Positions 4,537 through 42,833 of a stretch of DNA of 64,000 bases are shown here, piece by piece. The stretch is from positions 218,856-282,855 of the IMG/VR virus record IMGVR_UViG_3300047548_001236; one strand, given 5' to 3'. The notes under the pieces were generated by a model. The model ran no database searches and was not told where the DNA came from. It saw only the letters and a list, made by a program, of their open reading frames with translations. The number at the start of each line of letters is the position of its first letter. The stretch's first letter is position 1. The position numbers and the translations under genes are program-made.

Positions 4537-6464
4537 TAAAGTTCAAATCGTTTTTGTTGGAATATCTAACAGACAAGCAAAGGGAACGGTATAAAGACGT
4601 TCGCATGACCGATAAGGCTCGCGCTGACACGGACCATTTCTTTGGAGCTGGGAATGACAAGATACACGGCGAGATCGAGCATGACGACAAGTCAGAAATT
4701 CATCACCAGCTCGAAGCCCATCTAGGCCAGCCTATTTCTCACGAGGATTACAAAAAAGGAACGACTCTCGATCGTCACGGTCGAGAAGTGAAGATTGGCC
4801 GTCTGATTAAGGATAACGACCTTCGCAATCAGTTTGACCAAGATCCATCACGTAAGATAGCCAAAACGTCAACGCTCAAAACCACAACGGTACGTGGTAC
4901 GGAAGTAGCTGGCCAGACAAATCCTGAGCCAAACGCAGAGCATCCAAACGGCCACTCGTGGCACGACATAAGCTGTAAAAACGTTGAGAATGGCATAAAC
5001 AAGCATTATCTTGATAAAGAGATCCAACACGGCACCGTTGTCCATTTTGTTCACGACCACAACGGGCAGGAAATCTACCGAGCAACATTACACCCACATC
5101 ACAACGATGAGGGTCATACCATCTACTCCGTCGATGCGGAATATGGTATAAAACACCCCAACTTCACACAGGATGCTCATCGTGTCGCGAGCCAGCTTTC
5201 TGGCGAGTATAAAAGGGGAACATTTGTCAAAAACCGCAATGTGTATAACGACAATGGAATGAGGTATGCTCTTCACCCAGCAGCACCTGGAGCTGAGGTT
5301 GATAAAGAAACCCACGAAGAACTCGCAAAACCGTACGAAAAGCAGAGTGCTGAGAAGCTGAGAGTGCTGCTAACACATCCAAATATTTCAGGCGAAACGT
5401 TGTCACACGTTCTACACACTACTCAGGAGACGCCTGCAGACGTATGGGGTCTTGCAGCTAAACACCCAAATCTGAAAGGTGAACACCTAGAAAAAGCGTT
5501 GAACAGCACACATAGTCACACAGCGACTTCGGCTCTAAAGAATCCTAATGTTACAGCCGAACATCTGCATAAAGTGTTGGACGCTCCAGATACCAATCGT
5601 AACTGGGCTCAAAAACGAGCTGTGTTCGAATCCCCTGCTGTCAATTCGAGCCACATTGAGAAAGCTCTCAAGACCGATCCTAGCGATGATTTGTTTCATG
5701 CTGCAGCACAACATCCTAAGACAACATCTGCGCAGTTGAACGTTGTCGCTCAGCATTACCCATACATTGCTCTCCAACACAGAAACGTCAAGCCATCCAA
5801 CATCGATAAATGGTTGGATAGTGACGATGGTCGTCTACGTCAAGGAGCTGCTCTGCATAAAGCGGCTACTGATGCTAACCTCACAAAAGCTCTGTCACAG
5901 GATCCTGAAACGCGATCAGGCACTGTTTGGGCTGCTCTAGGCAACCGTAACATAAAACCACATCACATCGAACCGTTTCTGAATCACAGTAACAGAGAAC
6001 TCCGCATTGCGGCTGCTGAAAGTCCTGGAATCTCTCCTGAGCAGATTGATAAAGTTCTTGACCACGAGAAAGATCGGCATGTTTTAAGTACATTGATCCA
6101 CAGAACCAATACCAAGGTTACAGATGCACATCTACGCAAGGTTCTGAACGGTGATTATCCGATGAGAGTTAAAGAAAAGGTAGCAGAGCATCCGAACATA
6201 TCTTCTGATACGATCAACAAGGCGTTGGATTTTGCTCATCAAAACGATAATGGGAAGATGGCGCTCGACGCTCTTAGTCACGACCACGTAACCTCAGACA
6301 ACCTACACCACGCGTTGAAACTCGACAATCCTCGCATCGAGAGCGACGTCTTGTGGCATAATCAGGCTACACCAGAACACTGGGAATACGTTGCCAAGCA
6401 CAGTAAAAGCCCAGGTAACGTTGCTGTTGCCGAGCGGTTCCTGGCAAACGGTAGAAGAGGATAA
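4533..6464 (+). CDS. Putative capsid-targeted internal virion protein: conserved N-domain plus HEAT/LRV-like repeats (paralogue B)
   Basis: N-terminus MIKFKSFLLE; ATGA overlap with paralogue A; shared N-domain, divergent repeat region. Confidence 0.7.
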   Translation: MIKFKSFLLEYLTDKQRERYKDVRMTDKARADTDHFFGAGNDKIHGEIEHDDKSEIHHQLEAHLGQPISHEDYKKGTTLDRHGREVKIGRLIKDNDLRNQFDQDPSRKIAKTSTLKTTTVRGTEVAGQTNPEPNAEHPNGHSWHDISCKNVENGINKHYLDKEIQHGTVVHFVHDHNGQEIYRATLHPHHNDEGHTIYSVDAEYGIKHPNFTQDAHRVASQLSGEYKRGTFVKNRNVYNDNGMRYALHPAAPGAEVDKETHEELAKPYEKQSAEKLRVLLTHPNISGETLSHVLHTTQETPADVWGLAAKHPNLKGEHLEKALNSTHSHTATSALKNPNVTAEHLHKVLDAPDTNRNWAQKRAVFESPAVNSSHIEKALKTDPSDDLFHAAAQHPKTTSAQLNVVAQHYPYIALQHRNVKPSNIDKWLDSDDGRLRQGAALHKAATDANLTKALSQDPETRSGTVWAALGNRNIKPHHIEPFLNHSNRELRIAAAESPGISPEQIDKVLDHEKDRHVLSTLIHRTNTKVTDAHLRKVLNGDYPMRVKEKVAEHPNISSDTINKALDFAHQNDNGKMALDALSHDHVTSDNLHHALKLDNPRIESDVLWHNQATPEHWEYVAKHSKSPGNVAVAERFLANGRRG

Positions 6465-10374: not shown

Positions 10375-10584
10375 CTAATCTCCAATCACGACTGTAGTTG
10401 TTGTGTAGCATTCAAAATCGATTCGCGTTTCAGATCCATCTGCATTGACTCGGTAGAGTTGGACAACGTGGTCGCTCTCGATCAATTCCGCAATCTCTTC
10501 GCGGACAACATTGATATCGTCTGAATCTCTCGTTGGTACGGACGGTCCACCACCACCGTAGCCTTGTGCCTTAATTCTGTACAT
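10375..10584 (-). CDS. Small hypothetical protein
   Basis: GAGG SD before ATG 10584; tight packing. Confidence 0.55.
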   Translation of the reverse strand: MYRIKAQGYGGGGPSVPTRDSDDINVVREEIAELIESDHVVQLYRVNADGSETRIDFECYTTTTVVIGD

Positions 10585-10849
10585 TGTGGTATTTCCTCTT
10601 GATTTCATTTTCGATTTCTACGGCCATGATATTTACAAGCTCGTGTTCGGGATTCAGACCCATAATAACCGAGAGATCGTGAATCAATTCGTTCGATGCA
10701 TTGCTTTCCAACATCAGCTCCGCACCGTTGACTACTGTTGAGAAATTATAGCTGATATCGTTCCAGGATTTTCCCTGCCGAATGCATTTAATGAAGTAGT
10801 CGACGCCATCAACAGTTACCGTGAAATCATCAAGAGTCATGCCATACAT
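10571..10849 (-). CDS. Hypothetical protein
   Basis: GGAG SD; overlaps neighbours by a few bases. Confidence 0.6.
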   Translation of the reverse strand: MYGMTLDDFTVTVDGVDYFIKCIRQGKSWNDISYNFSTVVNGAELMLESNASNELIHDLSVIMGLNPEHELVNIMAVEIENEIKRKYHNVQN

Positions 10850-13794: not shown

Positions 13795-14013
13795 TTATTT
13801 CCCGTTATCAATGAATTCGATTGCTTGAGATTCCCACTCTGCAATATCGGAAACATCCGGTCCAAAAACAGGACTGTAGGTCATCGATACCTGACGTTCA
13901 AGAAGAACCTTAGCACCTTCTTTAATTGTCAGCACTCCGTAAAACTCATCTGTTTGCTTAACAGAACACTGATACTTGTTGTCCAGATCTGCTTTCCACA
14001 GAACGTCTTTCAT
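13795..14013 (-). CDS. Small hypothetical protein
   Basis: GAGG SD; ATGA overlap upstream. Confidence 0.55.
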   Translation of the reverse strand: MKDVLWKADLDNKYQCSVKQTDEFYGVLTIKEGAKVLLERQVSMTYSPVFGPDVSDIAEWESQAIEFIDNGK

Positions 14014-14264
14014 AATGCATTCCTCGCTTCATTGAATGTCATCTCATCAACGATCTGTATCTCCGAATCCGTTTCAATCCAGGCACGAGCACCGCATGAG
14101 AGTTGTGAACCATTGTATACCAATTTCGATGGTCCGTCAATCAGTACCTCTCGGCCATACCTGACAGTTTTGCCCGTCTTGATCGTATATACAGGTCTAT
14201 CTAAACCGTCCTTTGCATTCATCGCTATGTGCTGACGGTTGACGTGGATAATGTGCTTTGTCAT
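14010..14264 (-). CDS. Conserved-looking small phage protein
   Basis: IHVNRQHI...YNGSQLSCGARAWIET pattern recalled from small phage proteins; tight packing. Confidence 0.6.
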   Translation of the reverse strand: MTKHIIHVNRQHIAMNAKDGLDRPVYTIKTGKTVRYGREVLIDGPSKLVYNGSQLSCGARAWIETDSEIQIVDEMTFNEARNAL

Positions 14265-14265
14265 A

Positions 14266-14775
14266 TTAACCGACCCTCTTCTCTACAATAGCTTTAGGTA
14301 GAATAACAAAGCCATCAAATCCAGGGACAACATGAACAGACCACGCATTAAACACACGTCCCCTATACGGATCGTTGTAAGCAAGGTCTGTCTTAAACAT
14401 CATCGGACTGTAAAAGTAAGGTGTGTTGATGTCGGATTCATGAACCGTTTGAAAATACGTGTCTTCACCCATTACGACAACGTAATCATCTGGTGTGATT
14501 GTTGTATTGAAATCGTATTCATAGTTGTGAATTGCTTTCATGATTTTATCGGAAAGCAGCTTACACTTAGCGGGAGTGTAATCGTACATTTCAGTAACTA
14601 CATCATCGTAGTAAGGTTGTAGATACCCACGTTTGACCATTTGATTGAAAACCCAATCAAATAGATCTCGTGTCACATGCCAACCCTTGAACATGTTCGA
14701 TTTCTTGTATGCATCCTCGACAAGTAGCTTTTTGCTGATTCGATTGACTTTTGCATAACGAATTGTGTCTCTCAT
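14266..14775 (-). CDS. Hypothetical protein
   Basis: GAGGTG SD before ATG 14775. Confidence 0.6.
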   Translation of the reverse strand: MRDTIRYAKVNRISKKLLVEDAYKKSNMFKGWHVTRDLFDWVFNQMVKRGYLQPYYDDVVTEMYDYTPAKCKLLSDKIMKAIHNYEYDFNTTITPDDYVVVMGEDTYFQTVHESDINTPYFYSPMMFKTDLAYNDPYRGRVFNAWSVHVVPGFDGFVILPKAIVEKRVG

Positions 14776-14798
14776 ATTCACCTCATAAATGTAAATGG

Positions 14799-14820
14799 GT
14801 GAGGAGCCGAAGCTCCTCAC
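14799..14820 (-). terminator. C(UUCG)G hairpin, terminator- or processing-like
   Basis: GTGAGGAGC-TTCG-GCTCCTCAC, 9-bp stem at the stop of the upstream ORF; weak U-tract. Confidence 0.5.
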
Positions 14821-15044
14821 CCTCTGTAATGACCTACTCCCTCGTAGTCACATTCCCACTGTCCACATTCAGGACAACGATCTTTCCGATGAGGATATCC
14901 GTACCCATTCAGATCTTTACGATCCTTAAAGAACGTCTTTGGCGTTCCGTCAGGATACCGTAGACCTTTGTTGCGCTCATCGTTCATTTTCCAAATGAGC
15001 CCCATCATCACAGCATCGTCAAATGGTGTCTTTTCAGTATACAT
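14817..15044 (-). CDS. Small protein with C-terminal Cys cluster (CPECGQWEC)
   Basis: GGAGGT SD; CxxC motif. Confidence 0.55.
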   Translation of the reverse strand: MYTEKTPFDDAVMMGLIWKMNDERNKGLRYPDGTPKTFFKDRKDLNGYGYPHRKDRCPECGQWECDYEGVGHYRG

Positions 15045-15046
15045 GA

Positions 15047-16492
15047 TTAGTACCTCCCAGTTTCACGAGGAATGTATTCGCTTTCCATCAAAGCAGCTCG
15101 CTTGCGAATTGCTTCGAACGTGTCTTCGATCAACAGCTCACCGTTCTTGAACACGGTCCGCAGAATGTTTTGCTTGGATACCTCCTCGGGCAGCGTTCTG
15201 AAACCGCAAGAACCAATACCACACTGGTATTCGAGAGCAAGACGGCCTTTTTTGGACTGCTTGCCCTTGTCAGTGATCGGGTCTTTACTGAAACCTTCCC
15301 ACTCACCGTTGTTGATACGAATGGCCGAAGCCTTCATCGCATATTTCAGCGAATCGCGGTTCCAAGCCTGCAGAAGACCACCGCCCATACCGAAGGCGAT
15401 GTTATCGGCACTGAACCCAGCAGCTTTGAGGTTCTCAAGGATAATGGGCAACGTGTGTTCGTTGATACCATCTCCCTGAATCACTCGGATGTAAGGAGGA
15501 AGGACTTTATATCCCTTACTGTTGATCGTGTATCCAAACTTCTCAGCAAGGATCTTAACGACCTCGACAGGAACTGTTTCGGGATCACCACTGTCAGGAC
15601 GTACCACCAAGGTGCCGCCCATGTTGACGATCTTATCTTTCAGCTTGTCGCCCCAAAGATCACGGCATGCCGCATAGATGTCAAAGCTGTCCGAGACACA
15701 TGCAAGGATCTTGCCAGGCCCACCAAACTTGTCCAGCATGTTTTCGAATGCCTTAACTTCGTTTTCACGGCCCCAAGAAGTAATCGTGCTGTGTTCAGAA
15801 GCGGGAATTGAGAATCCAACAACCTGATCAGTGTTGTAGTACGCCATCACCCCTTCAAGAGCTTCGAACGTGTCGGTGCCCATGAAGTTGACAAGGTGTC
15901 CCATACCACCAAGGATTGCTGTTTCACCCGAGCTGGCACCACGAGCACCAAAGTCGTGCAGTTTGAACGTCAGTTGATCCATCACAGGAACATCCGACGT
16001 TTCGTGTAGGGCTTTAGCAATAAGCACCTTCATCTTGCGGCTCTTGGTCGCAACAGTGGAAGGATACCATACACCACGCAGCAGAGCGGTTTCAATGTAC
16101 GAGGTCAGCCACCACAGACGAGGATCGGTGTTGACAACCTGCACTTGAACGTTGTGAGTTTCCATGAACGTTCCTTCCGGAACAGCCTGGATCTCGAGAG
16201 GGAGAAGCCCACCATACTCTTTGACGATGATCTCCCAACCTTCACGGTTGAAAGGCAGGCCATGTGCAGTAACAATACGCTCTGCACGATCGATATCCTT
16301 CATCGTGATCGGAGTCAGTAGGTAGTCTTTGATGAATGCTTGCAGTCCAAAGAATACCGACATATCTTCACCACCACGTGACTCGATGTACGAGCTGATG
16401 TGAGTGGTTCCCTTGGGATATTGCATCCATTGGCTGAACTTGTAGCTGTCGGTGCGAACGATGGTACTGATAAAGCTAAGTACAGTCTTCAT
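15047..16492 (-). CDS. nadV: Nicotinamide phosphoribosyltransferase
   Basis: RTDSYKFSQW, LHDFGARG, SIPASEHSTIT, VSDSFD, VVRPDSGDP, IQGDGI, AFGMGGGLLQ. Confidence 0.95.
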   Translation of the reverse strand: MKTVLSFISTIVRTDSYKFSQWMQYPKGTTHISSYIESRGGEDMSVFFGLQAFIKDYLLTPITMKDIDRAERIVTAHGLPFNREGWEIIVKEYGGLLPLEIQAVPEGTFMETHNVQVQVVNTDPRLWWLTSYIETALLRGVWYPSTVATKSRKMKVLIAKALHETSDVPVMDQLTFKLHDFGARGASSGETAILGGMGHLVNFMGTDTFEALEGVMAYYNTDQVVGFSIPASEHSTITSWGRENEVKAFENMLDKFGGPGKILACVSDSFDIYAACRDLWGDKLKDKIVNMGGTLVVRPDSGDPETVPVEVVKILAEKFGYTINSKGYKVLPPYIRVIQGDGINEHTLPIILENLKAAGFSADNIAFGMGGGLLQAWNRDSLKYAMKASAIRINNGEWEGFSKDPITDKGKQSKKGRLALEYQCGIGSCGFRTLPEEVSKQNILRTVFKNGELLIEDTFEAIRKRAALMESEYIPRETGRY

Positions 16493-16544
16493 AATAGAAA
16501 CTCCTTCTATTGTTTGTGTTATGCCAAGACTCTCTGTCCTGGGC
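16493..16544 (-). promoter_or_regulatory. Tandem hairpin leader element (AGAGA loop plus GGAGU SD loop) of nadV
   Basis: mRNA GCCCAGGAC-AGAGA-GUCUUGGC AUAACACAAAC AAUAGAA-GGAGU-UUCUAUU AUG. Confidence 0.8.
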
Positions 16545-16549
16545 TTTGT

Positions 16550-16849
16550 TTAAGCAGCGGCTGGTTTAGCCTCCTGCCATTCTTTAGTCCACCGATCCAG
16601 TTCTTTGTAACCAGTGGGCCAATCATTCAAACCGAGGTCGGTCAGCTTACCGCAGCAGGGGCATTTGAAACATACTGCAGGGTCGCGATAACCCCAAGTA
16701 ACTTCTCCACCCGTCCCCGGAAAATACTTGAGATCGTTGAACTCAATCTCCAACAGAGCGTTACAACCTTCGCCACCATTACCCCATGCAGTACAACGAT
16801 GGCGCATAGCCCATTTTTCGCCAACTCGGCCAGGTTCGATGATTTTCAT
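16550..16849 (-). CDS. Small Cys-rich (probable Zn-binding) hypothetical protein in the NAD cluster
   Basis: C..C and CFKCPCC motifs; GAGGAG SD. Confidence 0.6.
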   Translation of the reverse strand: MKIIEPGRVGEKWAMRHRCTAWGNGGEGCNALLEIEFNDLKYFPGTGGEVTWGYRDPAVCFKCPCCGKLTDLGLNDWPTGYKELDRWTKEWQEAKPAAA

Positions 16850-16861
16850 ATTATGTTCTCC

Positions 16862-17962
16862 TCACAGTACAGGAACAAAATAGTCGATCATGAAAGCATG
16901 ATCTTCGAAGAACCGATCGCGCTGCTTTCCAATCTCATTCAGTGGAACCCAAAACGCTTTTTCAGCATCATCAGATCCTTTCACTTTGGGAAGCTCGCCA
17001 ACACCAAGATCGATGTAGAACGCTTGGGTGATGGTACGCCCACGAGCCGAACGATTCGGAGCATCAAAAGTCTTGGATGCCTTGATAGACCCCTTTAGAA
17101 CAGCAACAGGAACCTTGATCTTGGTTTCTTCTTTCAACTCACGAATGCAACCATCAACCATCGTCTCTTCTTGGTTGAGGAACCCTCCGGGTAATGCCCA
17201 TAAATTTTTTCCCGGCATGTCACCGCGCTTGACAAGCAGGATGTGACCCGACTGAACCACAACAGCATCGACAGTCATGAAGGTCGGCGGGAACGGTGCA
17301 GCCTTCCACGCCTCTTTGTACTTCTTGATCATCTGGTATTCAACAAGAAGTTTACCCCATGCTCCACCAGTATTACTGTTATTTGAGATAATCCGTTTCA
17401 TTTCCCAATGAGATTGTGAAGGCATAACTTCCCTGATGGAATCGTATTCCTCGTAATCAGTGGAATCAAAAAGCGACTTTCGAATGTCGGTGGCATTGAT
17501 ACCATCGACGTTAGGCACTTCAACATGGTTCTTCCACTTCGGGAAGATATTCAAGTAGTAGCTAGTGTGATCTTTCGAGTGACCAATCAGGCCAACATCG
17601 TTGAAATGCGGGCCGAGTGTTTCATCAACGACCTTCTGCACTGCATTGACCCACTTGTTGTCGTCATAGGGGTAGTCAGAGACAGGGACAACGAGAACAC
17701 GAGGGCTGGTTGCGAAGCCTTTGAGACTGCCAGCATCCCATGAGACGACTTCGTCCTTATAGACAGCATCGATCATGGCCTTGCGTTCTTGGAATGTGAA
17801 GGGATTTCGAATGCTCCGAGCAGCGAAACTGGATCCGACTACAACGACAACCTGTTTGGCTTGCTTGAGCGCGGCATCAATGACCGCCTTGTGTCCATTA
17901 TGAAACGGCTGGAATCTCCCTACAAACACAAGAGCATCCCGCATTTTAGTGGTATTTGACAT
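16862..17962 (-). CDS. nadM: Bifunctional NMN adenylyltransferase / ADP-ribose Nudix hydrolase (NadM-Nudix)
   Basis: GRFQPFHNGH (HxGH), RNPF, INATDIR; Nudix box GGFLNQEETMVDGCIRELKEETKI; GSDDAEKAFW. Confidence 0.95.
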   Translation of the reverse strand: MSNTTKMRDALVFVGRFQPFHNGHKAVIDAALKQAKQVVVVVGSSFAARSIRNPFTFQERKAMIDAVYKDEVVSWDAGSLKGFATSPRVLVVPVSDYPYDDNKWVNAVQKVVDETLGPHFNDVGLIGHSKDHTSYYLNIFPKWKNHVEVPNVDGINATDIRKSLFDSTDYEEYDSIREVMPSQSHWEMKRIISNNSNTGGAWGKLLVEYQMIKKYKEAWKAAPFPPTFMTVDAVVVQSGHILLVKRGDMPGKNLWALPGGFLNQEETMVDGCIRELKEETKIKVPVAVLKGSIKASKTFDAPNRSARGRTITQAFYIDLGVGELPKVKGSDDAEKAFWVPLNEIGKQRDRFFEDHAFMIDYFVPVL

Positions 17963-18010
17963 ATTAGAACTCCTCTAATGTATAAATAGTTTCGCAATCT
18001 CTTTGCAAAA
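17963..18010 (-). promoter_or_regulatory. Tandem hairpin leader element (AGAGA loop plus GGAGU SD loop) of nadM-Nudix
   Basis: mRNA UUUUGCAA-AGAGA-UUGCGAAA CUAUUUAUAC AUUAGA-GGAGU-UCUAAU AUG. Confidence 0.8.
17981..17988 (+). promoter_or_regulatory. T4-type late promoter TATAAATA for the homing endonuclease
   Basis: Exact T4 late consensus 86 nt upstream of the endonuclease ATG. Confidence 0.6.
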
Positions 18011-18074
18011 CGTTCTTCGCGGTAGTACCAATACCCAAGAACTCTACGATAAACAGTTTAGGAGCATCGCAGCT

Positions 18075-18794
18075 ATGGATATTTATATTTCCAACAAGTA
18101 CACTCGCACATATTTCACTATCATCAATAAGTCCCTTTCAGAAAACAGGAAAAGGACGGATTCACGCATTTATGAGGAACATCACATTGTCCCTAAATCG
18201 TGTGGAGGCCCAAACGAAGATGCCAATCTCGTACTCCTTACCCCCAAAGAACACTACGTGTGTCATCGACTTCTCCCAAAGATGGTAACGTCTAAGACCC
18301 ATTATGAGAAAATGATATACGCCTTGTGGTCACTTGTCAACGGTAATGGCAGGTCTAAACGATACTCACCTAGCGGTAAGATATACCAGCAAATCAAAGA
18401 AGAACAAAGAACTGTACGATCTGAACGCATGAAAGGTGAGAGAAATCACTTCTATGGTAAAACTCACTCTGACGAACTGAAAGCCAAGATGAGTATAGAT
18501 AACCCCGCAAAAAGAGAAGACGTCAAGGTAAAACTTCGAGGCCCTAGACCAGGATTTATGCCTCATAATCACTACACTGGGTGGTCGGATGCTACCAAAG
18601 AGAAATTGAGGCAGGCTAACATAGGCAAGAAACTGTCAGATGAGACCCGACAAAAGATGAGCAGAACAAGATCAAACAAAGTGTGGGTTAAAAAGGAAGG
18701 TGAAAAGTCTCGACATATACAGTCTGAATACTTACCCACCTTCCTGGCTGATGGTTGGTGTCTGGGCAGACACCTTACACGACGTAAGCCATAG
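18075..18794 (+). mobile_element. Free-standing HNH homing endonuclease with NUMOD3-like C-terminal repeats
   Basis: YEEHHIVPKSCGGPNEDANLVLLTPKEHYVCHRLL; NHFYGKTHSDELKAKMS, WSDATKEKLRQA, LSDETRQKMS; opposite strand to all neighbours; AGGAG SD before ATG 18075. Confidence 0.88.
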
Positions 18795-18799
18795 TCAAA

Positions 18800-19039
18800 T
18801 CACTCGGAAGTCAAGTCTTCTGCGGGGATTTGGCTGAGAAGTTTGGTGGCGGCTTTCGTAGCGTCGTCGACCAGTGCTTGAGGAGAATACCCCAGCAGTT
18901 TAGCAACAATCAGTCCGGCGTAGACCGATGCGAGTAGATCATCCTCAGTGTTTTCACTGTTTTCCAGTCTGCCAAGCCAGTCTTCCATATGAACTGCAGC
19001 GCGGGCGCTGATCTTGGCGATTCGTTCTTGTTCATCCAT
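18800..19039 (-). CDS. Small hypothetical protein in the NAD cluster
   Basis: AAAGGA SD; tight packing after nadR. Confidence 0.6.
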   Translation of the reverse strand: MDEQERIAKISARAAVHMEDWLGRLENSENTEDDLLASVYAGLIVAKLLGYSPQALVDDATKAATKLLSQIPAEDLTSE

Positions 19040-19041
19040 TA

Positions 19042-20082
19042 TCAGTTCCTTTCATATTCTCTGATAGGTGTGGTGTAGTAGTCAAACATCTTGATCACAT
19101 CGTTAGCGACTTCACGACGCTGCTTGCGCAAGTCTGTGTTAGCTACGACGGTGTATTCACAATCGAACTCTTCAAGTAGATCGATCCAGAATTGAGTTTG
19201 GCTTTCACGCTTATCGCCACCGTAACGAAGAGGATCCTGCTCAAACGGAATCTGATCATTCATCACGATGTATAGATCGGACTTAGTTTTCTTAGCATAG
19301 TGGGTGACCAGGTCGATATCTTCATCCGTCCCACCACCCCAAAGACGGTAGTAGCCCAGCGTGCTAAACAAGTCCGTGTCTTGGAAGATGAATGCCTTGT
19401 CATACAAGTCGTTCTGAGCTGCCTGTTGTACAGCATACTGCCCGTGAATGATTGCACGCATCTTTTCATCAGTGATTTCGGGACCAACCGTTTTGAGATA
19501 TTCACGAGCCCATTCGGGAACGAAGTGCCCATAAAGCTCCTCTGCCAACCACTTGGTCATAGTAGTCTTACCGCAGCTTTCAGCTCCAAACACTGTTACC
19601 GTCTTGCGAATGTGCTTTTGGAACTCCGGAAGGATGAAGTCAAAGTTTCCGATAAGATCTTGACGTACTTCCGTTCCTCTGATCGGAACGGTCTCGCGGT
19701 AGCGATTGCACGGCATAAACTTGCACCCGAGCACGTTGGCCATATCGATTCCGTACAGCTCGCTTGCGACAAAATAGTCGTCTGGTTTGACGTCTACAAA
19801 CTCTTCCACGATATCACGCCACACTTTCCAGAAGTTTGGATGCTCGCTGGGTTGTTGAGGGACGTCACGATGAAGGTGGTGGATCTTCACACGAGAATCG
19901 GCATTATATGCCGCTCTGAAAGCGTCAACTCTATCTTTACCGTTGACGGGCTCTCTTTCCATCGAGCCAACAATCACATGAACCGTACCACGCCACGTCA
20001 CCAACGACCGTGCAAAATCGATTAGATACTTGTGCCCGAGAGTGGGCACAAGTGCTGTCATAAGAATGATTGCGTTAGGCAT
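19042..20082 (-). CDS. nadR: NadR-like protein (NMN adenylyltransferase-like domain plus ribosylnicotinamide kinase), no HTH
   Basis: TALVPTLGH, VPIRGTEVR, Walker A GAESCGKTT, VPEWAREY, DTDLFST, PFEQDPLRYG; GGAGG SD before ATG 20082. Confidence 0.88.
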   Translation of the reverse strand: MPNAIILMTALVPTLGHKYLIDFARSLVTWRGTVHVIVGSMEREPVNGKDRVDAFRAAYNADSRVKIHHLHRDVPQQPSEHPNFWKVWRDIVEEFVDVKPDDYFVASELYGIDMANVLGCKFMPCNRYRETVPIRGTEVRQDLIGNFDFILPEFQKHIRKTVTVFGAESCGKTTMTKWLAEELYGHFVPEWAREYLKTVGPEITDEKMRAIIHGQYAVQQAAQNDLYDKAFIFQDTDLFSTLGYYRLWGGGTDEDIDLVTHYAKKTKSDLYIVMNDQIPFEQDPLRYGGDKRESQTQFWIDLLEEFDCEYTVVANTDLRKQRREVANDVIKMFDYYTTPIREYERN

Positions 20083-20092
20083 TTTTGCCTCC

Positions 20093-20287
20093 TCAGAGTT
20101 TCTGACGAACAAATCCAGTCGGTTGGGTCAGCATTTCGACAGCTTCGAGAACAAAGAATTGAATCCCTGGATTTGCCTTGGCAAGCCTTTCAGCTTCCCG
20201 AACTGCATCTTGACGATTAGCGTGCCGTACTTTTGGAGAATTACCGTCACCGGTAATCATCCAGAACTTTTTCGAGCTGTTTTCCAT
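20093..20287 (-). CDS. Small hypothetical protein (alternative upstream start near 20368)
   Basis: FWMI...PKVRHAN..DAVREAERLAKANPG..FFVLEA; AAAGGA SD. Confidence 0.6.
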   Translation of the reverse strand: MENSSKKFWMITGDGNSPKVRHANRQDAVREAERLAKANPGIQFFVLEAVEMLTQPTGFVRQKL

Positions 20288-20367
20288 TTCATTTCCTTTC
20301 AAAACATCATCATATCCGATCCACCAGGATCTTGGTTTGCACGTATACCAGTTTGAATCGTTTTCCA

Positions 20368-21078
20368 TCACAACCATCTCCGATTTGCATAATAATCATT
20401 TAGCCGTTCTTCCTCAGTGGAAGTGTCTTTTGTCATAGAACGCTTCCACTGAACATGACCGATAACGGTGTTTGCAAGGAAGAAGATATACTGGAAGGCA
20501 ACCAGAGTCAACCCACTATAGATGAAGAATGGAATTGAAACAATGTCAATACCTGCCCAAAGAGTCCAGTTTTCAAGCTTCTTGTTATCCAGCATCAACT
20601 GAGCAACGCCGCTAGCGACAGCAAGACCTACGTCGATTGGGTTCAGACCGGCAAGGCCAGCAGGGTTGAACAACATATTTGCAACAAGGAATAGACCGAG
20701 AATTGCAAGACCGACAGCACCGTATCCTGCATACCATTTCAGAGGAATGCGAGTGACGGGCCGAGTGTTGTCGTCGCTCCCCCAACGGAACCAACCGTAG
20801 ATCAGCGAGAACACTAGGTAGAGGTTGAACACCGCAAGTGCCAACATACCCCATTGGTAAAAGAGAACGGAATAAGCAGCGGTTGTTACAATACCGATTG
20901 GATAGTTCCATCGGGACTGGCGAGTGCACAACCAGGTGCAACTATATGAAGTGAAAACCGCAAACACTTCCAGCCAGTTGAGAGCCACGATCCATCCCAT
21001 CCAGAGACCGACACCGTAGCTGAGAGCAGTAAGCACCACTGCAAGGGCGATAGATTCAAGAATATACTTGGTAGTCAT
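20368..21078 (-). CDS. pnuC: Nicotinamide riboside transporter PnuC
   Basis: Multiple TM segments; LCTRQSRWNYPIG, YGWFRW, AQLMLDNKKLENWTLW..IDIVSI; next to nadR. Confidence 0.9.
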   Translation of the reverse strand: MTTKYILESIALAVVLTALSYGVGLWMGWIVALNWLEVFAVFTSYSCTWLCTRQSRWNYPIGIVTTAAYSVLFYQWGMLALAVFNLYLVFSLIYGWFRWGSDDNTRPVTRIPLKWYAGYGAVGLAILGLFLVANMLFNPAGLAGLNPIDVGLAVASGVAQLMLDNKKLENWTLWAGIDIVSIPFFIYSGLTLVAFQYIFFLANTVIGHVQWKRSMTKDTSTEEERLNDYYANRRWL

Positions 21079-21080
21079 CT

Positions 21081-21126
21081 GCAAAAACTCCTTTTGCTAT
21101 GAAACGTAGACCTCTCTGGTCCACGT
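21081..21126 (-). promoter_or_regulatory. Tandem hairpin leader element (AGAGA loop plus GGAGU SD loop) of pnuC
   Basis: mRNA ACGUGGACC-AGAGA-GGUCUACGU UUCAUA GCAAAA-GGAGU-UUUUGC AG AUG. Confidence 0.8.
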
Positions 21127-21138
21127 GCTTGTTTTGTA

Positions 21139-21330
21139 TCACCAGATAGGATCTGGTGCACCATCAATTATCACTTCTGTGATGAAGTATGCTCGGAACA
21201 GCCGCAGTTTCGTTTGTTCGAACATAGCCTCTGCTTCAACGGCTTTGTCGTGAGACGAGTATACACCCAACACGTAGGAACCATCATATCCCATGTCTCC
21301 ACGAAGGACAAATACTTTATCACCGCTCAT
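21139..21330 (-). CDS. Small hypothetical protein
   Basis: ATGA overlap; VLGVYSSHDKA pattern common in small phage proteins. Confidence 0.55.
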   Translation of the reverse strand: MSGDKVFVLRGDMGYDGSYVLGVYSSHDKAVEAEAMFEQTKLRLFRAYFITEVIIDGAPDPIW

Positions 21331-21479
21331 TGCACATATTCCCATTTCTCTTCTTCGATATACATACCCTTCATCTCAGGATACATATTCTCGTAAAAGT
21401 CTTTCCATTGTTCCGCGTCACCCAGCAAAGCAAATGCGGCTACCGGACCTAGCGTGGGACATTTGACAGTGTAACGCAT
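21327..21479 (-). CDS. Small hypothetical protein, 50 aa (not in ORF track)
   Basis: MRYTVKCPTLGPVAAFALLGDAEQWKDFYENMYPEMKGMYIEEEKWEYVQ; TGATG coupling. Confidence 0.5.
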   Translation of the reverse strand: MRYTVKCPTLGPVAAFALLGDAEQWKDFYENMYPEMKGMYIEEEKWEYVQ

Positions 21480-21691
21480 CAGAAAAACTTCTCCTCAAGA
21501 GTCGTCATCCAATATTCGAAGTCACCCCAGCCCATCTGTTTGGGGGTAACCAGACCCAATCGATCAGTAACCTTGTATTTGATCTTCTTGTACTCCAGCA
21601 TAGATGCCATGCAGAATACTGTATGAGTCTCGTCGGCAACGACAGTACAAGTCTTACCCCATTCGGGTTCATACCAAGTGATCATTCGCAT
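21479..21691 (-). CDS. Small hypothetical protein
   Basis: AGGTGA SD before ATG 21691. Confidence 0.55.
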   Translation of the reverse strand: MRMITWYEPEWGKTCTVVADETHTVFCMASMLEYKKIKYKVTDRLGLVTPKQMGWGDFEYWMTTLEEKFF

Positions 21692-21699
21692 TTGTTCAC

Positions 21700-21888
21700 C
21701 TATTTGTTGAATACAAATAATGGATAACCCTTTTGACGGCACTCGTCAACGGCTTCTTCATATGTGATAGCATTTAATTTGGTTTTTTCGTTCAAACGAA
21801 CAGTACACCATCCCGTTGTGTGTGGATTGACGTGACTCTTACAGTACACCCACACTCCTGAACCAAAGAAGCGTTCATCGTCTGTCAT
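21700..21888 (-). CDS. Small hypothetical protein
   Basis: ATGA overlap with the upstream stop; YC..H..PH.TGWC motif. Confidence 0.55.
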   Translation of the reverse strand: MTDDERFFGSGVWVYCKSHVNPHTTGWCTVRLNEKTKLNAITYEEAVDECRQKGYPLFVFNK

Positions 21889-22265
21889 TGCTTGATAAAT
21901 CCCCAAGCAATGCAGCCACCTCGAACATCTTTATCGCACGCTGCTAAAGTATCGTGATTGTCCATGATCGATGTAACGGTTTCACTACCGTCCATAAACC
22001 CGACCAACCAAAGTGGGATCAGAATTAGATTGCCGTCCCAATTTCCAAAACCAAACTCGTATAGGGTTTCACGATCCAGTTGTTTCAGCTCATTCTGTGT
22101 AATCGTTGGGATCTCTTCATATCCAAAATCCTTGGCGCGGGAGAGACCTCGAGCGAGTTCTTGGAACGCAAACTCCACACTCCATGAGTTGTGATATTCA
22201 TTGACCGACGATGCAGCATTCAGCACACGACGACGAGCTCTTTTCAGTTTTTCAATCGTATTCAT
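21885..22265 (-). CDS. Hypothetical protein
   Basis: GGAG SD; tight packing. Confidence 0.6.
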   Translation of the reverse strand: MNTIEKLKRARRRVLNAASSVNEYHNSWSVEFAFQELARGLSRAKDFGYEEIPTITQNELKQLDRETLYEFGFGNWDGNLILIPLWLVGFMDGSETVTSIMDNHDTLAACDKDVRGGCIAWGFIKQ

Positions 22266-22279
22266 TTAGCTTTCTCCTG

Positions 22280-22549
22280 TCATCCAAAAGGTTGGTTATC
22301 ACCACGAGTGATGGCAAGAATCTGTCGATACTTCTCTGCTTGGTCTTTTTCAATTTGAGTTGGAGAAGCGTGCACTTCATGTTCATACGATTCACTATCA
22401 GCAATCCTACCGATCGCGAAAGCATAGTTTTTAGCAGCCATCTCTTTCATGATAGCGAGTCTCTCCGCCAGACTGGGGTTATTCTCATATCGAATAAGAA
22501 TACTTTGAAGGTCGAGCAGAATTTGGACATCTCTTTTCGTCAGCATCAC
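22280..22549 (-). CDS. Hypothetical protein
   Basis: GGAG SD; GTGA overlap. Confidence 0.55.
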   Translation of the reverse strand: MMLTKRDVQILLDLQSILIRYENNPSLAERLAIMKEMAAKNYAFAIGRIADSESYEHEVHASPTQIEKDQAEKYRQILAITRGDNQPFG

Positions 22550-22758
22550 GCGTTCTCCCGCATCCGAAGGTATTCGTTGATGTCGTCCTGGATTTCATTC
22601 AGAGTCACGAGCCCCGCCTGCCAATCGGCATAGATCCGTTGATACACTTTGTTCTGATCAACGGGGATCTTCCCATATTGTGCATTGACGTGTTGAACAT
22701 GGAGAAACACCAATTGGCGAATCTTCCGCTGAACGAGTTGTGTGGGTTCGGTCATCAC
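22546..22758 (-). CDS. Small hypothetical protein
   Basis: AAGGA SD; GTGA overlap. Confidence 0.55.
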   Translation of the reverse strand: MMTEPTQLVQRKIRQLVFLHVQHVNAQYGKIPVDQNKVYQRIYADWQAGLVTLNEIQDDINEYLRMRENA

Positions 22759-22913
22759 ATGGTTTCCTTCAAGCGCTTGTTGATGATTTGATTGATCCTA
22801 TCGGTGATCAATTTTTTTGCCCACTCGGGTGCGGGATCGGAGGGGACAAGAGTCAGAGCCTTCCGCAACTGAGCATTTGTCAGGGCATTCAGACGAGCCA
22901 GTTCTTTTTCCAT
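22755..22913 (-). CDS. Small hypothetical protein, 52 aa
   Basis: GAGGAG SD before ATG 22913 (MEKELARL...). Confidence 0.5.
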   Translation of the reverse strand: MEKELARLNALTNAQLRKALTLVPSDPAPEWAKKLITDRINQIINKRLKETM

Positions 22914-22917
22914 TTGA

Positions 22918-23250
22918 TCACTCCTCGTCTTCATCATCTTCATCCTTCCAGCGATTCTTCCACAGCCATTCGTGGCTGCCTGGCTTACGTCCCATGGCGC
23001 GACCATCCACCCACTCTCCCACGGTACGAGCCGTAAACGAAAGGGTACCCGTGTTGGCATACACCTCAACACTATCCTCCATGGTGATCTTGCCCTCGCT
23101 CAGGAGCTTGGTCAGCAGAGCCAGGATGGGCGAACGGTACGACACAGCCGTCACTCCCAGAGCCGTAGCTGCCGGCTTCATGGTGTACTCACTCTTACCC
23201 CGAGTCTTCTTGACCGAGCCGGTATCGATGCGGATCACGTTGTTGGTCAT
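22918..23250 (-). CDS. Early hypothetical protein with acidic tail
   Basis: First gene after an early promoter; AAGGAG SD. Confidence 0.65.
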   Translation of the reverse strand: MTNNVIRIDTGSVKKTRGKSEYTMKPAATALGVTAVSYRSPILALLTKLLSEGKITMEDSVEVYANTGTLSFTARTVGEWVDGRAMGRKPGSHEWLWKNRWKDEDDEDEE

Positions 23251-41814: not shown

Positions 41815-42833
41815 GTTTTTCTCCACATTGCTAGTTTCAGGTTGGCTTCAAGCCCCTTGTATGTATTTGCTCTGATAATCGACTCGATGTCTTGGATACC
41901 AGCGAGAACCATATCATTAATGTCCTTTTGTTGTATGTTAGTTGGCCATATACACACGGACATGCCCTGACGAATCAATCTCTCAATCCTCTTATGGATC
42001 TCTTTGTTTCTAGGTTCATTATCGAACACGAAAGTTGCATTGGATGGGTTGTCGATACCCTCGAAGCTTCCATCAGCTCCTGCCATTGCTACTGCATTAT
42101 TCAAGAACAGCGAGTCTATAGGTCCCTCAACAACGAAATATGGCTTGTTGAAATCGACCTTATCGAGACCGAAGATTTTCGGTTTGTCTTGGAACATAAT
42201 TGTTAGATACCGTAACCCGTCAGGATCGAATCCTCTGCCTGTCAGACCAAAGCAAACTCCTTTCTTGTCGATAAACGGCAAGATTAAACGAGGATGATCT
42301 TTGTCTGTGTTTTGAAACTTGCCTGGCAGATTGCTGTTGATCCACTGCATGAACTTTGGGGCGTAAAACAATCTGTAGTGCTGATGAGAAGGTATCTTTC
42401 TCTTCTGTATGTATTTTTTCACAGGGTGGTCTGGTTGAAGCTGACTAATCTTTTTGATCTTCTTCAACGGATCCGTCATGATCTTCGGAGTGTTCGTTTT
42501 GAACTCTTCGGGTGACGTGTTTGAGCTTACTATTCCACCCTTCACCTTGCCAATGTACTTAGCTGACAGGTATTGGTTGTATACTAGCGGATCGACAGTT
42601 TTGATAAAGTTGTGGAAGTTGAGGCTTGCACTGCAGTTGTGGCAATAATAATGAAAGGACCCGTCTTTCGGATCCTCTAAAAGCCAGCCTCTAGCTTTGA
42701 TCTTAGATTTTTGTGAGTCCCCGCATATGGGGCATCTAAAGTTGATCTGGTAAGGATTTGTCGCCTTGATCTTGAAACGGTCAAGCCTATTTGATAGTTG
42801 CGTAGCGTGTTGTAGATCAACTATATCTACCAT
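41811..42833 (-). CDS. gp61: DNA primase (T4 gp61-like)
   Basis: Zn finger CPICGDSQKS...YCHNC; TOPRIM VVEGPIDSLF, VFDNEPRN, KDINDM. Confidence 0.95.
   Translation of the reverse strand: MVDIVDLQHATQLSNRLDRFKIKATNPYQINFRCPICGDSQKSKIKARGWLLEDPKDGSFHYYCHNCSASLNFHNFIKTVDPLVYNQYLSAKYIGKVKGGIVSSNTSPEEFKTNTPKIMTDPLKKIKKISQLQPDHPVKKYIQKRKIPSHQHYRLFYAPKFMQWINSNLPGKFQNTDKDHPRLILPFIDKKGVCFGLTGRGFDPDGLRYLTIMFQDKPKIFGLDKVDFNKPYFVVEGPIDSLFLNNAVAMAGADGSFEGIDNPSNATFVFDNEPRNKEIHKRIERLIRQGMSVCIWPTNIQQKDINDMVLAGIQDIESIIRANTYKGLEANLKLAMWRKT

Follow-up and report, generated by a model that had tools for sequence, protein, structure and literature searches.

Genes and leaders of the NAD-salvage locus

The analysed stretch of giant phage DNA (64 kb, hereafter the window) carries a set of NAD-recycling genes on the minus strand. 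Their identities were confirmed by Pfam searches. The nadV gene (15047-16492) encodes a nicotinamide phosphoribosyltransferase (NAMPT) of 481 aa (NAPRTase and NAMPT_N domains; PF04095, 6.9e-56, and PF18127, 7.5e-25). The nadM-Nudix gene (16862-17962) encodes a bifunctional NMN adenylyltransferase / ADP-ribose pyrophosphatase of 366 aa (NUDIX, 5.3e-18; CTP_transf_like, 6.3e-13), an assignment also supported by annotated homologs. The pnuC gene (20368-21078) encodes a nicotinamide riboside/NMN transporter of 236 aa (NMN_transporter; PF04973, 2e-37). Between nadM and nadV lies a Cys-rich ORF of 99 aa (orf99, 16550-16849), which belongs to the nadM transcription unit, matched no family and had homologs only in the close clade (10 of 35 motif-positive loci). 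It is therefore not a conserved partner of the element described below. A nadR-like gene (19042-20082; AAA_28 kinase domain, PHROG 3462) has no leader of its own and lies in the operon headed by the pnuC leader. A further ORF (orf94, 20093-20377; weak DUF2188) overlaps its neighbours between pnuC and the nadR-like gene. An HNH homing endonuclease gene sits next to the nadM leader.

The nadV, nadM-Nudix and pnuC genes are each preceded by hairpin 1 (H1; 7-9 bp, loop AGAGA), a linker of 6-12 nt, hairpin 2 (H2; 6-7 bp), whose loop GGAGU is the Shine-Dalgarno (SD) sequence, and the AUG. In the nadV leader (16490-16544), H1 occupies 16524-16542 (CCAGGAC-AGAGA-GTCTTGG, loop at 16531-16535), followed by a 12-nt linker at 16512-16523 (CAUAACACAAAC), H2 at 16493-16511 (AATAGAA-GGAGT-TTCTATT, loop at 16500-16504) and the AUG at 16490-16492. 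In the nadM leader (17960-18011), H1 lies at 17989-18011 (loop at 17998-18002, closed by A-U), the 9-nt linker at 17980-17988, H2 at 17963-17979 (loop at 17969-17973) and the AUG at 17960-17962. In the pnuC leader (21076-21126), H1 lies at 21104-21126 (loop at 21113-21117), the 6-nt linker at 21098-21103 and H2 at 21081-21097 (loop at 21087-21091), followed by AG and the AUG at 21076-21078. The three leaders reported in the initial annotation were thus found exactly as described, and its observation holds, with the single correction that the nadV H1 comprises 7 contiguous pairs and reaches 8 only with a bulged C. The MFE folds reproduced both hairpins (z = -3.5 for nadM and -3.9 for pnuC).

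The occurrence of the pattern in shuffled sequence, which had been named beforehand as a possible refutation, was evaluated in 300 dinucleotide shuffles of the window. Hairpins of at least 6 bp with a GGAGT loop numbered 3 in the window against a mean of 0.27 in the shuffles, and hairpins of at least 7 bp with an AGAGA loop numbered 5 against 0.18. The tandem occurred 3 times in the window and in none of the shuffles. A covariance model seeded without the nadM and nadV leaders of the window still recovered them (29.7 and 28.4 bits, respectively; E about 2-5e-4 in 1.6 Mb) and nothing else in the 64-kb window. The nadV leader scored 28.4 bits with the model R1 and 46.4 bits with the model R2, the nadM leader 29.7 and 44.2 bits, and the pnuC leader 55.7 and 51.4 bits.

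Conservation, covariation and gene specificity of the element

The same structure recurs with compensating mutations before the same genes in over a hundred other phages. In 1.6 Mb of related phage loci, the covariance models gave 87-91 hits, all of them on the sense strand, and the downstream genes were NadM, NadV or PnuC in about 60 of 63 distinct hits. In the complete 149-kb genome of Phaeobacter phage MD18, only the two NAD leaders were found; the MD18 genome and the window together gave only 5 hits at E<=10, all of them NAD leaders, and no extra copy marked a separate autoregulated regulator gene in MD18. Gene-blind pattern scans of IMG/VR gave the same association: 60 of 69 unique matches of the GATAGAC class preceded NadM or NadV, and every match of the CAGAGAG class that forms both stems preceded a NAD gene or a neighbour, apart from two giant-virus MAG (GVMAG) contigs. 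However, about half of the sampled phage nadM and nadV genes lack H1, and H2-only leaders are common in other phage lineages. None of 18 NadR-like genes carried the motif. The leader class clustered on the NadM tree, consistent with co-inheritance. The hosts of motif-positive phages include cyanobacteria and alpha- and gamma-proteobacteria, ranging from Synechococcus to Phaeobacter and Xanthomonas.

The stems covaried strongly. In the alignment, 96.1% of pair cells were paired against 56.4% in shuffles (0 of 500 shuffles reached this value), 12 of 13 pairs showed double changes, and the covariation score was 0.925, against 0.20 for shuffled data and at most 0.09 with slid partners. An independent loop-anchored count on the gene-blind pattern hits showed H1 pairs 2-7 to be paired in 78-100% and H2 pairs 4-6 in 94-100%, with pair 7 dropping to 27%. 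In contrast to the stems, which turn over completely, the loops are conserved. Loop 1 is A-[G/U/A]-[A/U]-G-A (A-N-W-G-A), with AUAGA as common as AGAGA, is usually closed by C-G or G-C, and keeps A1, G4 and A5 in about 65 diverse leaders. Loop 2 is GGAG[U/C/A], with the consensus GGAGY, and its GGAG is invariant in 64 of 64 leaders, although only 25 of 105 genes in the window (24%) have GGAG at the SD position. Some lineages keep the architecture with a different loop 1, and the loop-1 class then changes in concert in both leaders of a lineage (GWWGUA in enterobacterial jumbo phages of Erwinia and Klebsiella; GGAGN in others). Different loop-1 variants also coexist in one genome. The linker varies from 4 to 15 nt, while the loop-to-loop distance is held at 19-26 nt. 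The length of H1 varies from 5 to 11 bp without correlation to the length of H2. H1 is stable (median -8 kcal/mol) and H2 is weak (median -3 kcal/mol), and the 3' arm of H2 occupies the whole SD-to-AUG spacer and ends 0-3 nt before the AUG. No complementarity or covariation was found between loop 1 and loop 2, the H2 arm or the early coding region. In many relatives, including at least 15 nadM leaders, a TATAAATA box (the T4 late-promoter consensus) sits 3-6 nt upstream of the nadM H1, so H1 probably also forms the 5'-terminal hairpin of that transcript. Nothing similar was found in Rfam 15 or in the searchable literature.

Possible modes of action

The interpretation given in the initial annotation, a phage NAD regulon controlled at translation by a dimeric protein reading two RGAGW loops or by a metabolite, is supported only in part. 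The evidence supports an RNA (single-strand) structure rather than a DNA operator, its specificity to NAD-salvage genes, and its distinctness from both NAD+ riboswitch classes and from CsrA-type sites. The proposed RGAGW consensus for the two loops does not hold in relatives. Of the regulators proposed, the HTH-less NadR and the small cluster ORFs are disfavoured because they are not co-conserved with the motif, and a host-specific factor is disfavoured by the host range, whereas NadM-Nudix, NadV or a metabolite remain possible.

We are highly confident that the element is a functional, NAD-gene-specific structured RNA, and it is probably an undescribed switch controlling how phages rebuild NAD+. 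It is repeated before each transcription or translation unit of the NAD+ salvage genes, namely nadM-Nudix and nadV, which together form the 'NARP2' NAD+ reconstitution pathway, and pnuC, followed by the nadR-like gene. The analysis itself demonstrates the two covarying hairpins, the conserved loops, the placement of H2 against the AUG, the constrained loop-to-loop distance and the contrasting stabilities of H1 and H2; translational control, the binding of any factor and the resulting repression are inferred. The most likely function, proposed here tentatively, is that of a translational operator. In this view, H2 alone is too weak to block the ribosome and simply displays the SD, and a trans-acting factor gripping loops 1 and 2 together would lock H2 shut and exclude the 30S subunit, repressing all NAD genes in parallel. 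We favour a protein as this hypothetical factor, at somewhat less than even confidence, over a two-hairpin riboswitch, since the loop-1 class changes in concert within a lineage while the architecture is kept. Simple hairpins with conserved loops, a variable linker, a constrained loop-to-loop distance, a weak H2 and a strong H1 are operator-like features. NadM-Nudix and NadV are the only proteins always co-encoded with the motif across very different phages and hosts, and some cassettes hold nothing else (LucasX, L024). The leading candidate, although doubtful in itself, is therefore autogenous control by one of them. NadM-Nudix is preferred, as its Nudix domain could sense ADP-ribose or NAD+ by analogy with NrtR, which would couple expression to the NAD+ state of the infected cell. 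A rationale for such control is provided by the report that NARP2 is costly and that the KVP40 NARP2 operon was toxic in E. coli (bioRxiv 10.1101/2024.02.11.579819). On the other hand, there is no direct evidence of any binding partner, and neither enzyme family is known to bind RNA. NadM and NadV are not basic (median net charge of about -3 and -10, respectively) and showed no motif-specific difference in length, charge or inserts between motif-positive and motif-negative phages. Moreover, the SD lies in the loop and is not sequestered, so that repression would need the added factor.

A riboswitch, in which the two hairpins dock through their conserved loops, with the A/C-rich linker, around an NAD-related metabolite (NAD+, NMN, nicotinamide, ADP-ribose or PRPP), is less likely but possible. 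Docking would stabilise the weak H2 next to the AUG and lower initiation, or the reverse, and the element would constitute a third NAD-related riboswitch class, and a phage-borne one. This reading is favoured by the exclusive association with three functionally linked NAD-salvage genes, as with the NAD+-I and NAD+-II riboswitches (PMC7749635), and by the host range and the cassettes with no third gene, which imply that the effector must be universal or cassette-borne. It is also favoured by the invariant loop nucleotides, the constrained loop-to-loop distance, the lack of an RNA-binding signature in NadM and NadV and the precedent of the guanidine-II riboswitch. However, there are very few conserved unpaired nucleotides, no junction, internal loop or pseudoknot, and no evident mutually exclusive alternative structure. 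Loop 1 also tolerates G, U or A at position 2 and is replaced by unrelated loop classes in lineages that keep the architecture, and the length of H1 is variable. An effector-independent expression element is slightly less likely still. Here H1 would act as a 5'-terminal or intercistronic stabiliser and H2 as an SD-presenting hairpin setting a fixed, moderate translation rate for costly enzymes, both inherited with the gene cassette. The TATAAATA box upstream of H1, which would place H1 at the very 5' end of the mRNA, the H2-only leaders, the exposed SD in a weak hairpin and the clustering of leader class on the NadM tree are in line with this. In contrast, a stabiliser hairpin does not need an invariant loop sequence, the element is restricted to 2-3 NAD genes per genome among hundreds of genes, three paralogous copies are maintained in one genome, and the invariance of GGAG is far above general SD usage.

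Two further readings are very unlikely. A site for a global host RNA-binding protein or nuclease is suggested by the CsrA-like A-GGA-G of loop 2 with its closing A, by two hairpins 20-26 nt apart with one over the SD, which is the classic layout for a CsrA/RsmA dimer, and by the cleavage of GGAG in SDs by T4 RegB. However, loop 1 never contains GGA in class A, and the motif occurs in phages of Synechococcus, Phaeobacter and Xanthomonas, whereas cyanobacteria and most alpha-proteobacteria are not known to carry CsrA. Global regulators would not be restricted to NAD genes, and RegB is known only from some T4-like phages. A DNA-level element (operator, hairpin promoter, terminator or mobile promoter-stem-loop cassette), or a chance or hitch-hiking similarity, draws on the fact that inverted repeats can be operators, on a simple scan that flagged the nadM H1 as terminator-like, and on the neighbouring HNH gene. 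Against it, the repeat arms vary freely with compensatory changes, including G-U, which is not complementary in DNA, while only the non-palindromic centre is conserved. All hits are on the sense strand, the nadV and pnuC copies lack a U-tract, the element does not recur at other genes as PeSL-type cassettes do, and shuffles gave no tandems.

Comparison with known regulatory systems

The NAD+-I (nadA motif) and NAD+-II (pnuC motif) riboswitches are likewise cis-acting 5' leaders tied to NAD metabolism genes and act at the ribosome-binding site, and in NAD+-II the SD is part of the structure. Their architecture is unrelated, as NAD+-II has P1, P1a and a pseudoknot and is found only in Streptococcus (PMC7749635), and NAD+-I has tandem bulged-stem domains and is found in Acidobacteria. 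The Rfam 15 models gave no hit at E<=10. In the element described here, the SD is in a loop, the element is phage-borne and ligand binding remains hypothetical. The guanidine-II (mini-ykkC) riboswitch also consists of two small tandem hairpins with variable stems, conserved closing pairs and loops and a variable-length linker, with the second hairpin at the SD. However, its loops are identical ACGR tetraloops that kiss symmetrically, whereas the loops here are pentaloops that differ from each other (ANWGA and GGAGY) and show no evident pairing, and the gene context is different. CsrA/RsmA target sites have two hairpin loops 10-60 nt apart, one overlapping the SD, with GGA in a loop; here loop 1 lacks GGA, the host range includes taxa without CsrA, and the element is strictly specific to NAD genes. 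Autogenous translational operators bound by enzymes or phage proteins, such as the E. coli thrS operator bound by dimeric ThrRS, the T4 gp43 and gp32 operators and the coat-protein hairpins of RNA phages, use simple hairpins with sequence-specific loops at or next to the SD or AUG. A dimer can bind two hairpins (thrS), and repression works by excluding the 30S subunit. Here, no binding protein is identified, and the putative operator is repeated on several genes of a metabolic regulon and conserved across unrelated phage families. NrtR, the Nudix-related transcriptional regulator of NAD regulons, binds palindromic DNA through a winged helix-turn-helix domain, whereas the element is RNA and no HTH protein is conserved nearby. 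Nevertheless, NrtR controls NAD salvage and synthesis genes as a regulon through a Nudix-fold sensor of ADP-ribose, which offers a functional analogy for a sensor based on NadM-Nudix.

The leaders in the window

The three leaders noted in the initial annotation were first re-read from the sequence, and the observation held: all three sites lie on the minus strand and read exactly as they had been written. Each leader consists of a first hairpin (H1, 7-9 bp) with the loop AGAGA, a 6-12 nt linker without G-rich sequence, and a second, A/U-rich hairpin (H2, 6-7 bp) whose pentaloop GGAGU is the Shine-Dalgarno (SD) sequence, with the AUG located 0-2 nt after the stem. The downstream genes are a NAMPT-type nadV (15047-16492), a bifunctional nadM-Nudix (16862-17962) and pnuC (20368-21078), the last of which heads an overlapping run of orf94, a nadR-like kinase gene and orf79. 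In 300 dinucleotide-preserving shuffles of the window the tandem never occurred, and single hairpins of either type were about twenty times rarer than observed. ViennaRNA reproduced both hairpins as the minimum-energy fold. An extended H2 reaching the start codon appeared in some minimum-energy folds (nadM, pnuC and the nadM leader of Phaeobacter phage MD18) but not in nadV-type leaders. The source is a 283-kb uncultured jumbo-phage contig, IMGVR_UViG_3300047548_001236, and a megablast search of the 6.2-kb region against cultured phages gave no match.

The surroundings of the leaders were also inspected. An HNH/NUMOD3 homing-endonuclease gene (18075-18794, plus strand) sits on the opposite strand immediately upstream of the nadM leader. 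A TATAAATA box on the plus strand (17980-17987) lies inside the linker of the leader, in antisense, just before this gene, and a minus-strand TATAAATA (18073-18080) overlaps its start codon, 62 nt upstream of H1. In relatives without the insertion, the box lies 3-6 nt from H1. A 99-aa Cys-rich ORF (16550-16849, minus strand; possible zinc ribbon) lies between nadM and nadV. Four further H1-like hairpins (7-10 bp, loops AGAGA or AAAGA) without an H2 were found inside ORFs on the minus strand, at 10487-10505, 42654-42678, 47030-47048 and 47340-47364, two of them in the same 287-aa ORF of unknown function (46902-47765). This brings the total to 7 in the window, all on the sense strand, against a mean of 1.4 (maximum 5) in shuffles. 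Pfam and PHROG searches gave nothing for the two host ORFs examined, at 10375-10608 and 46902-47765. These hairpins may be extra binding sites for the same putative factor, or chance occurrences. A sigma-70 promoter scan gave a count that did not exceed that of shuffles.

Structure, gene specificity and distribution

Protein-guided retrieval of nadV, nadM and pnuC loci from IMG/VR gave 113 loci totalling 1.78 Mb (individual loci are designated here by L and a number). A simple descriptor, a hairpin of at least 5 bp with a GGAGN loop followed by ATG, hit almost only NAD genes and revealed H1 upstream in most of them. A MAFFT alignment of 54 leaders misregistered the 3' arm of H1 and was not used for counting; a gapless seed followed by Infernal re-alignment was used instead. 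A covariance model (R1) was seeded from 17 leaders of identical geometry, which included the pnuC leader of the window but not its nadM or nadV leaders. R1 found 87 matches in 1.6 Mb of both strands, every one on the gene-sense strand, and in the window it found exactly the three sites. Of 63 distinct hits, about 60 precede NadM, NadV or PnuC, and the rest precede small unknown ORFs embedded among those genes. Unknown proteins carrying their own copy of the leader were found at L002:1621-1983, L048:7660-8013, L020:7277-7918, L038:15349-16212 and L097:7813-7965. They comprise phrog_33851 (about 120 aa), which does so in two distant phages, phrog_1843 (213 aa), a 287-aa Met/Ala-rich protein and a 50-aa protein (phrog_13068), and are candidate new members of the phage NAD regulon. 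Pfam and PHROG searches of small cluster ORFs and of the extra regulon members gave no function.

In the Infernal alignment, 96.1% of pair cells formed standard pairs, against 56.4% after shuffling (0 of 500 shuffles reached the observed value), and 12 of 13 pairs showed double (compensatory) changes. The covariation score was 0.925, against 0.20 for shuffles and at most 0.09 when partners were slid by 1-3 columns. As this alignment is fitted to the structure, an independent test was added, in which two gene-blind pattern scans of IMG/VR specified only the loops and the three inner H2 pairs. The 77 unique matches that precede NAD genes had H1 pairs 2-7 paired in 78-100% of cases, using all four Watson-Crick types, and H2 pairs 4-6 paired in 94-100%, whereas a notional seventh pair dropped to 27%. 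The 27 matches elsewhere paired at about chance. The same scans gave the gene association without gene-based ascertainment. Of 69 unique GATAGAC-class matches, 60 precede NadM or NadV, and all CAGAGAG-class matches that form both stems precede NAD genes or their neighbours, apart from two contigs labelled as giant-virus MAGs (GVMAGs; L131:10180-10222 and L143:11492-11534). These two carry a good two-hairpin match (25.8 bits), followed only by a 13-aa ORF from the nearest ATG. A near-clonal family of 46-97 kb contigs (L116, L121, L122 and about 30 more loci from sample 3300045988) matched the loop pattern by chance: it has a different hairpin (CCGTT-GCAGAGAG-AACGG) before a 142-aa protein, with no H2 and no NAD gene. 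A second model (R2, 66 sequences) found only the nadM and nadV leaders in the complete 149-kb genome of phage MD18 and only the three sites in the window, even at E<=10.

The family consensus comprises an H1 with fully variable stems (5-11 bp, mode 7), usually closed by C-G or G-C, and a loop 1 of A-[G/U/A]-[A/U]-G-A, in which A1, G4 and A5 are invariant. AUAGA (29) and AGAGA (25) were about equally common, and AGUGA and AAAGA also occurred. The linker is A/C-rich and 4-15 nt long, and H2 is N3-A-R-A / U-Y-U-N3 around GGAG[U>A,C]. The AUG begins within 3 nt of the end of H2 (in a few leaders it overlaps the last 1-2 stem nucleotides), which puts it 6-10 nt after GGAG. The loop-to-loop distance is held at 19-26 nt, and H1 is stable (median -8.1 kcal/mol) while H2 is weak (median -3.0 kcal/mol). 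GGAG is invariant in loop 2, although only 25 of 105 predicted genes of the window carry GGAG at the SD position; loop 2 is therefore constrained beyond ordinary SD function. Different loop-1 variants coexist in one genome, e.g., AGUGA before nadM and AGAGA before nadV in L018, and are therefore, judging from sequence alone, functionally equivalent. In at least 15 relatives, TATAAAT(A) ends 2-6 nt before the nadM H1. TATAAATA is the consensus of T4-type late promoters, and if the box is such a promoter, H1 would be the 5'-terminal hairpin of that mRNA, which is an inference. The nadV and pnuC copies follow directly after an upstream stop codon. Many AUAGA-class nadV leaders (L011:7949-7995, L008:2625-2669, L234, L257, L210 and L261) have an H1 with a conserved symmetric purine-rich internal loop (e.g., GGC-AA-GGG / CCC-AA-GCC), which is absent from the AGAGA-class leaders of the window. 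In L032, a 382-kb phage contig, a second hairpin containing AGAGA (GTGGGCG-AGAGAGT-CGCCCAC) lies about 10-30 nt upstream of 10165, just upstream of the nadV leader's own H1, and the same sequence is in L005; H1 is therefore apparently duplicated in tandem.

Among the unique leaders sampled, leaders with the A-N-W-G-A loop 1 (class A) precede 31 of 67 nadM, 30 of 57 nadV, 4 of 16 pnuC and 0 of 18 nadR-like genes. Penetrance was near-complete when the proteins were at least 60% identical to those of the window, and the leader label clustered on a NadM tree but was not monophyletic. Among cultured phages, the motif is present in Phaeobacter phage MD18 and Synechococcus phage B23 and, with a variant H2, in Synechococcus phage BUCT-ZZ01 and Xanthomonas phage LucasX. 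The enterobacterial jumbo phages Erwinia pEa_SNUABM_44 and Klebsiella K64-1 (L183:2933-2979 and 4623-4668; L195 upstream of 2519 and 3659) keep the two-hairpin layout before nadM and nadV, but loop 1 is G-W-W-G-U-A before both genes (GAUGUA, GUUGUA or GUAGUA) and H2 is ACUAAG-GGAGU-CUUAGA, a second loop class of the same architecture. Only H2 was found in several T4-like and other phages, namely Stenotrophomonas Ps15, Citrobacter Ci1 and, in a minimal version, KVP40, and no motif was found in Caulobacter CcrPW, Brevundimonas Kikimora or Erythrobacter L02. A NadV search of contigs from GTDB genomes returned only three MAG loci, of which two lacked the motif. The third (L175:202-251, CALMJT010000002.1, a 20-kb contig of an Alteromonadales MAG) carries a class-A nadM leader with the loop AGAGA, plus an H1-like hairpin before nadV, and may be viral or a prophage. 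The element is thus phage-specific only as far as this small cellular sample shows.

Putative mechanism and effector

The analysis demonstrates a conserved, covarying, gene-specific RNA structure that embraces the SD-to-AUG region. That it controls translation initiation of the NAD-salvage regulon, and that it is read by any protein or metabolite, is inferred. In this view, H2 alone is too weak to block the ribosome, and a factor holding loop 1 and loop 2 would clamp it shut. The interpretation in the initial annotation, of an RNA structure rather than a DNA operator, read by a dimeric protein (NadM-Nudix, the NadR, a small cluster ORF or a host factor) or by a metabolite, was supported in part. 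To look for a conserved third protein as regulator, ORFs of 35 motif-positive and 32 motif-negative loci were clustered, and only NadM and NadV were always co-encoded with the motif. The 99-aa ORF of the window is conserved only in its close clade; the MD18 98-aa ORF and the ORFs at the same position in B23 and BUCT-ZZ01 are unrelated to it and to each other, and LucasX and locus L024 have none. The NadR-like gene is infrequent and never carried the motif, and no additional motif copy marks another gene in MD18. The phages and their hosts are very diverse. The effector should therefore be a cassette enzyme, a universal metabolite or the translation machinery itself.

We tentatively favour a protein, although its being NadM-Nudix or NadV in particular is no more than possible. 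The element looks like a classic operator, with simple hairpins, sequence-specific loops, a flexible linker and tolerance at loop position 2, and whole lineages have switched loop-1 class in both leaders together, which suggests co-evolution with a macromolecule. Against this, neither enzyme showed an RNA-binding signature in motif-positive phages, and length, pI and net charge did not differ with the presence of the motif. The main rival, a two-hairpin riboswitch resembling guanidine-II, is considered doubtful. A search for a pseudoknot or loop-loop pairing showed that loop 1 resembles the 5' arm of some H2 hairpins (AAUAGA) and could thus pair with the 3' arm, but this does not hold for the GCAAAA-type H2 and shows no covariation, and no conserved sequence follows the AUG beyond A-rich codons. 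An effector-independent stabiliser combined with an SD-presenting hairpin is somewhat less likely still; it would explain the H2-only leaders, but it does not explain the invariant loop 1 or the restriction to NAD genes.

NAD+ depletion is a major anti-phage strategy, and NadV plus NadM-Nudix (NARP2) is a recently recognised phage counter-measure that is metabolically costly and can be toxic (bioRxiv 10.1101/2024.02.11.579819), which gives a rationale for control. The NARP2 paper does not mention UTRs or riboswitches, and in the literature searched we found nothing on how phages control this pathway, no description of such a motif in full text, and nothing linking nadV to a riboswitch or describing a NAD+-III class. 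The element described here is compact (about 46 nt), abundant (more than 100 distinct examples) and strongly covarying, and it occurs in cultured, tractable systems (MD18, B23 and BUCT-ZZ01), so that whether phage NAD+ reconstitution is regulated, and by what signal, becomes directly testable. It would add either a new NAD-related riboswitch class or a new enzyme-RNA autoregulatory circuit. A further reading, which we regard as rather unlikely although compatible with the data, is that the leader is a phage-borne, two-hairpin sensor of the NAD+ state of the infected cell, either as a third NAD-related riboswitch class or as an RNA operator read by NadM-Nudix in an ADP-ribose- or NAD+-dependent way. 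It would then switch on the costly NAD+ reconstitution genes (NARP2, PnuC) only when host NAD+-depleting immunity (Thoeris, DSR, SIR2-type systems) fires, forming a regulated counter-defence circuit carried with the gene cassette across unrelated phage families.

Comparison with known regulatory elements

The leaders were compared with Rfam 15 (4227 families), and no hit was obtained at any leader, either in window positions 14000-23000 at E<=10 or in five cultured-phage loci at E<=1. The NAD+-II riboswitch (pnuC motif) has a P1/P1a/pseudoknot architecture, which differs from that of the leaders, and is confined to Streptococcus (PMC7749635). The NAD+-I riboswitch (nadA motif) has tandem bulged-stem domains, whereas the hairpins here are unbulged with pentaloops. 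The guanidine-II (mini-ykkC) riboswitch has two hairpins, each with an ACGR tetraloop, in place of the ANWGA and GGAGY pentaloops found here. The GGA motif expected in both hairpin loops of a CsrA/RsmA site pair is present in loop 2 (GGAGY) but never in loop 1, which is A-N-W-G-A in 64/64 parsed leaders. The motif-positive cultured phages infect Synechococcus, Phaeobacter and Xanthomonas; cyanobacteria and most alpha-proteobacteria are not known to encode CsrA, and the host range argues against a host-specific factor. With regard to T4 RegB, whose target is GGAG in the SD of an mRNA of a phage that encodes RegB, and which was compared on its target sequence alone, GGAG is present in loop 2, and the motif also occurs in phages that are not T4-like (MD18 and LucasX).

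Lambdoid N-boxB hairpins have a GNRA-like pentaloop (GAAAA, GAAGA or GACAA) in a nut site with boxA, whereas loop 1 always starts with A (65/65) and the element abuts an SD and AUG rather than a boxA. The leaders do not fit an intrinsic terminator, i.e., a GC-rich hairpin followed by a U-tract, as the nadV and pnuC H1 hairpins are followed by CAUAAC and UUCAUA, and only the nadM H1 was flagged, by a loose T-count. The PeSL-type mobile promoter/stem-loop cassettes of T4-like phages are repeated before many unrelated genes of a genome, while only 2 hits were found in the 149-kb MD18 genome and 3 in the 64-kb window, each before a NAD gene. The G-U pairs and the exclusive sense-strand occurrence argue for RNA over DNA. 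The conserved secondary structure with compensatory changes, the fixed position relative to the start codon and the gene-family specificity are those of a structured cis-regulatory mRNA leader, and the element constitutes a new family of such leaders, attached to a counter-defence pathway.
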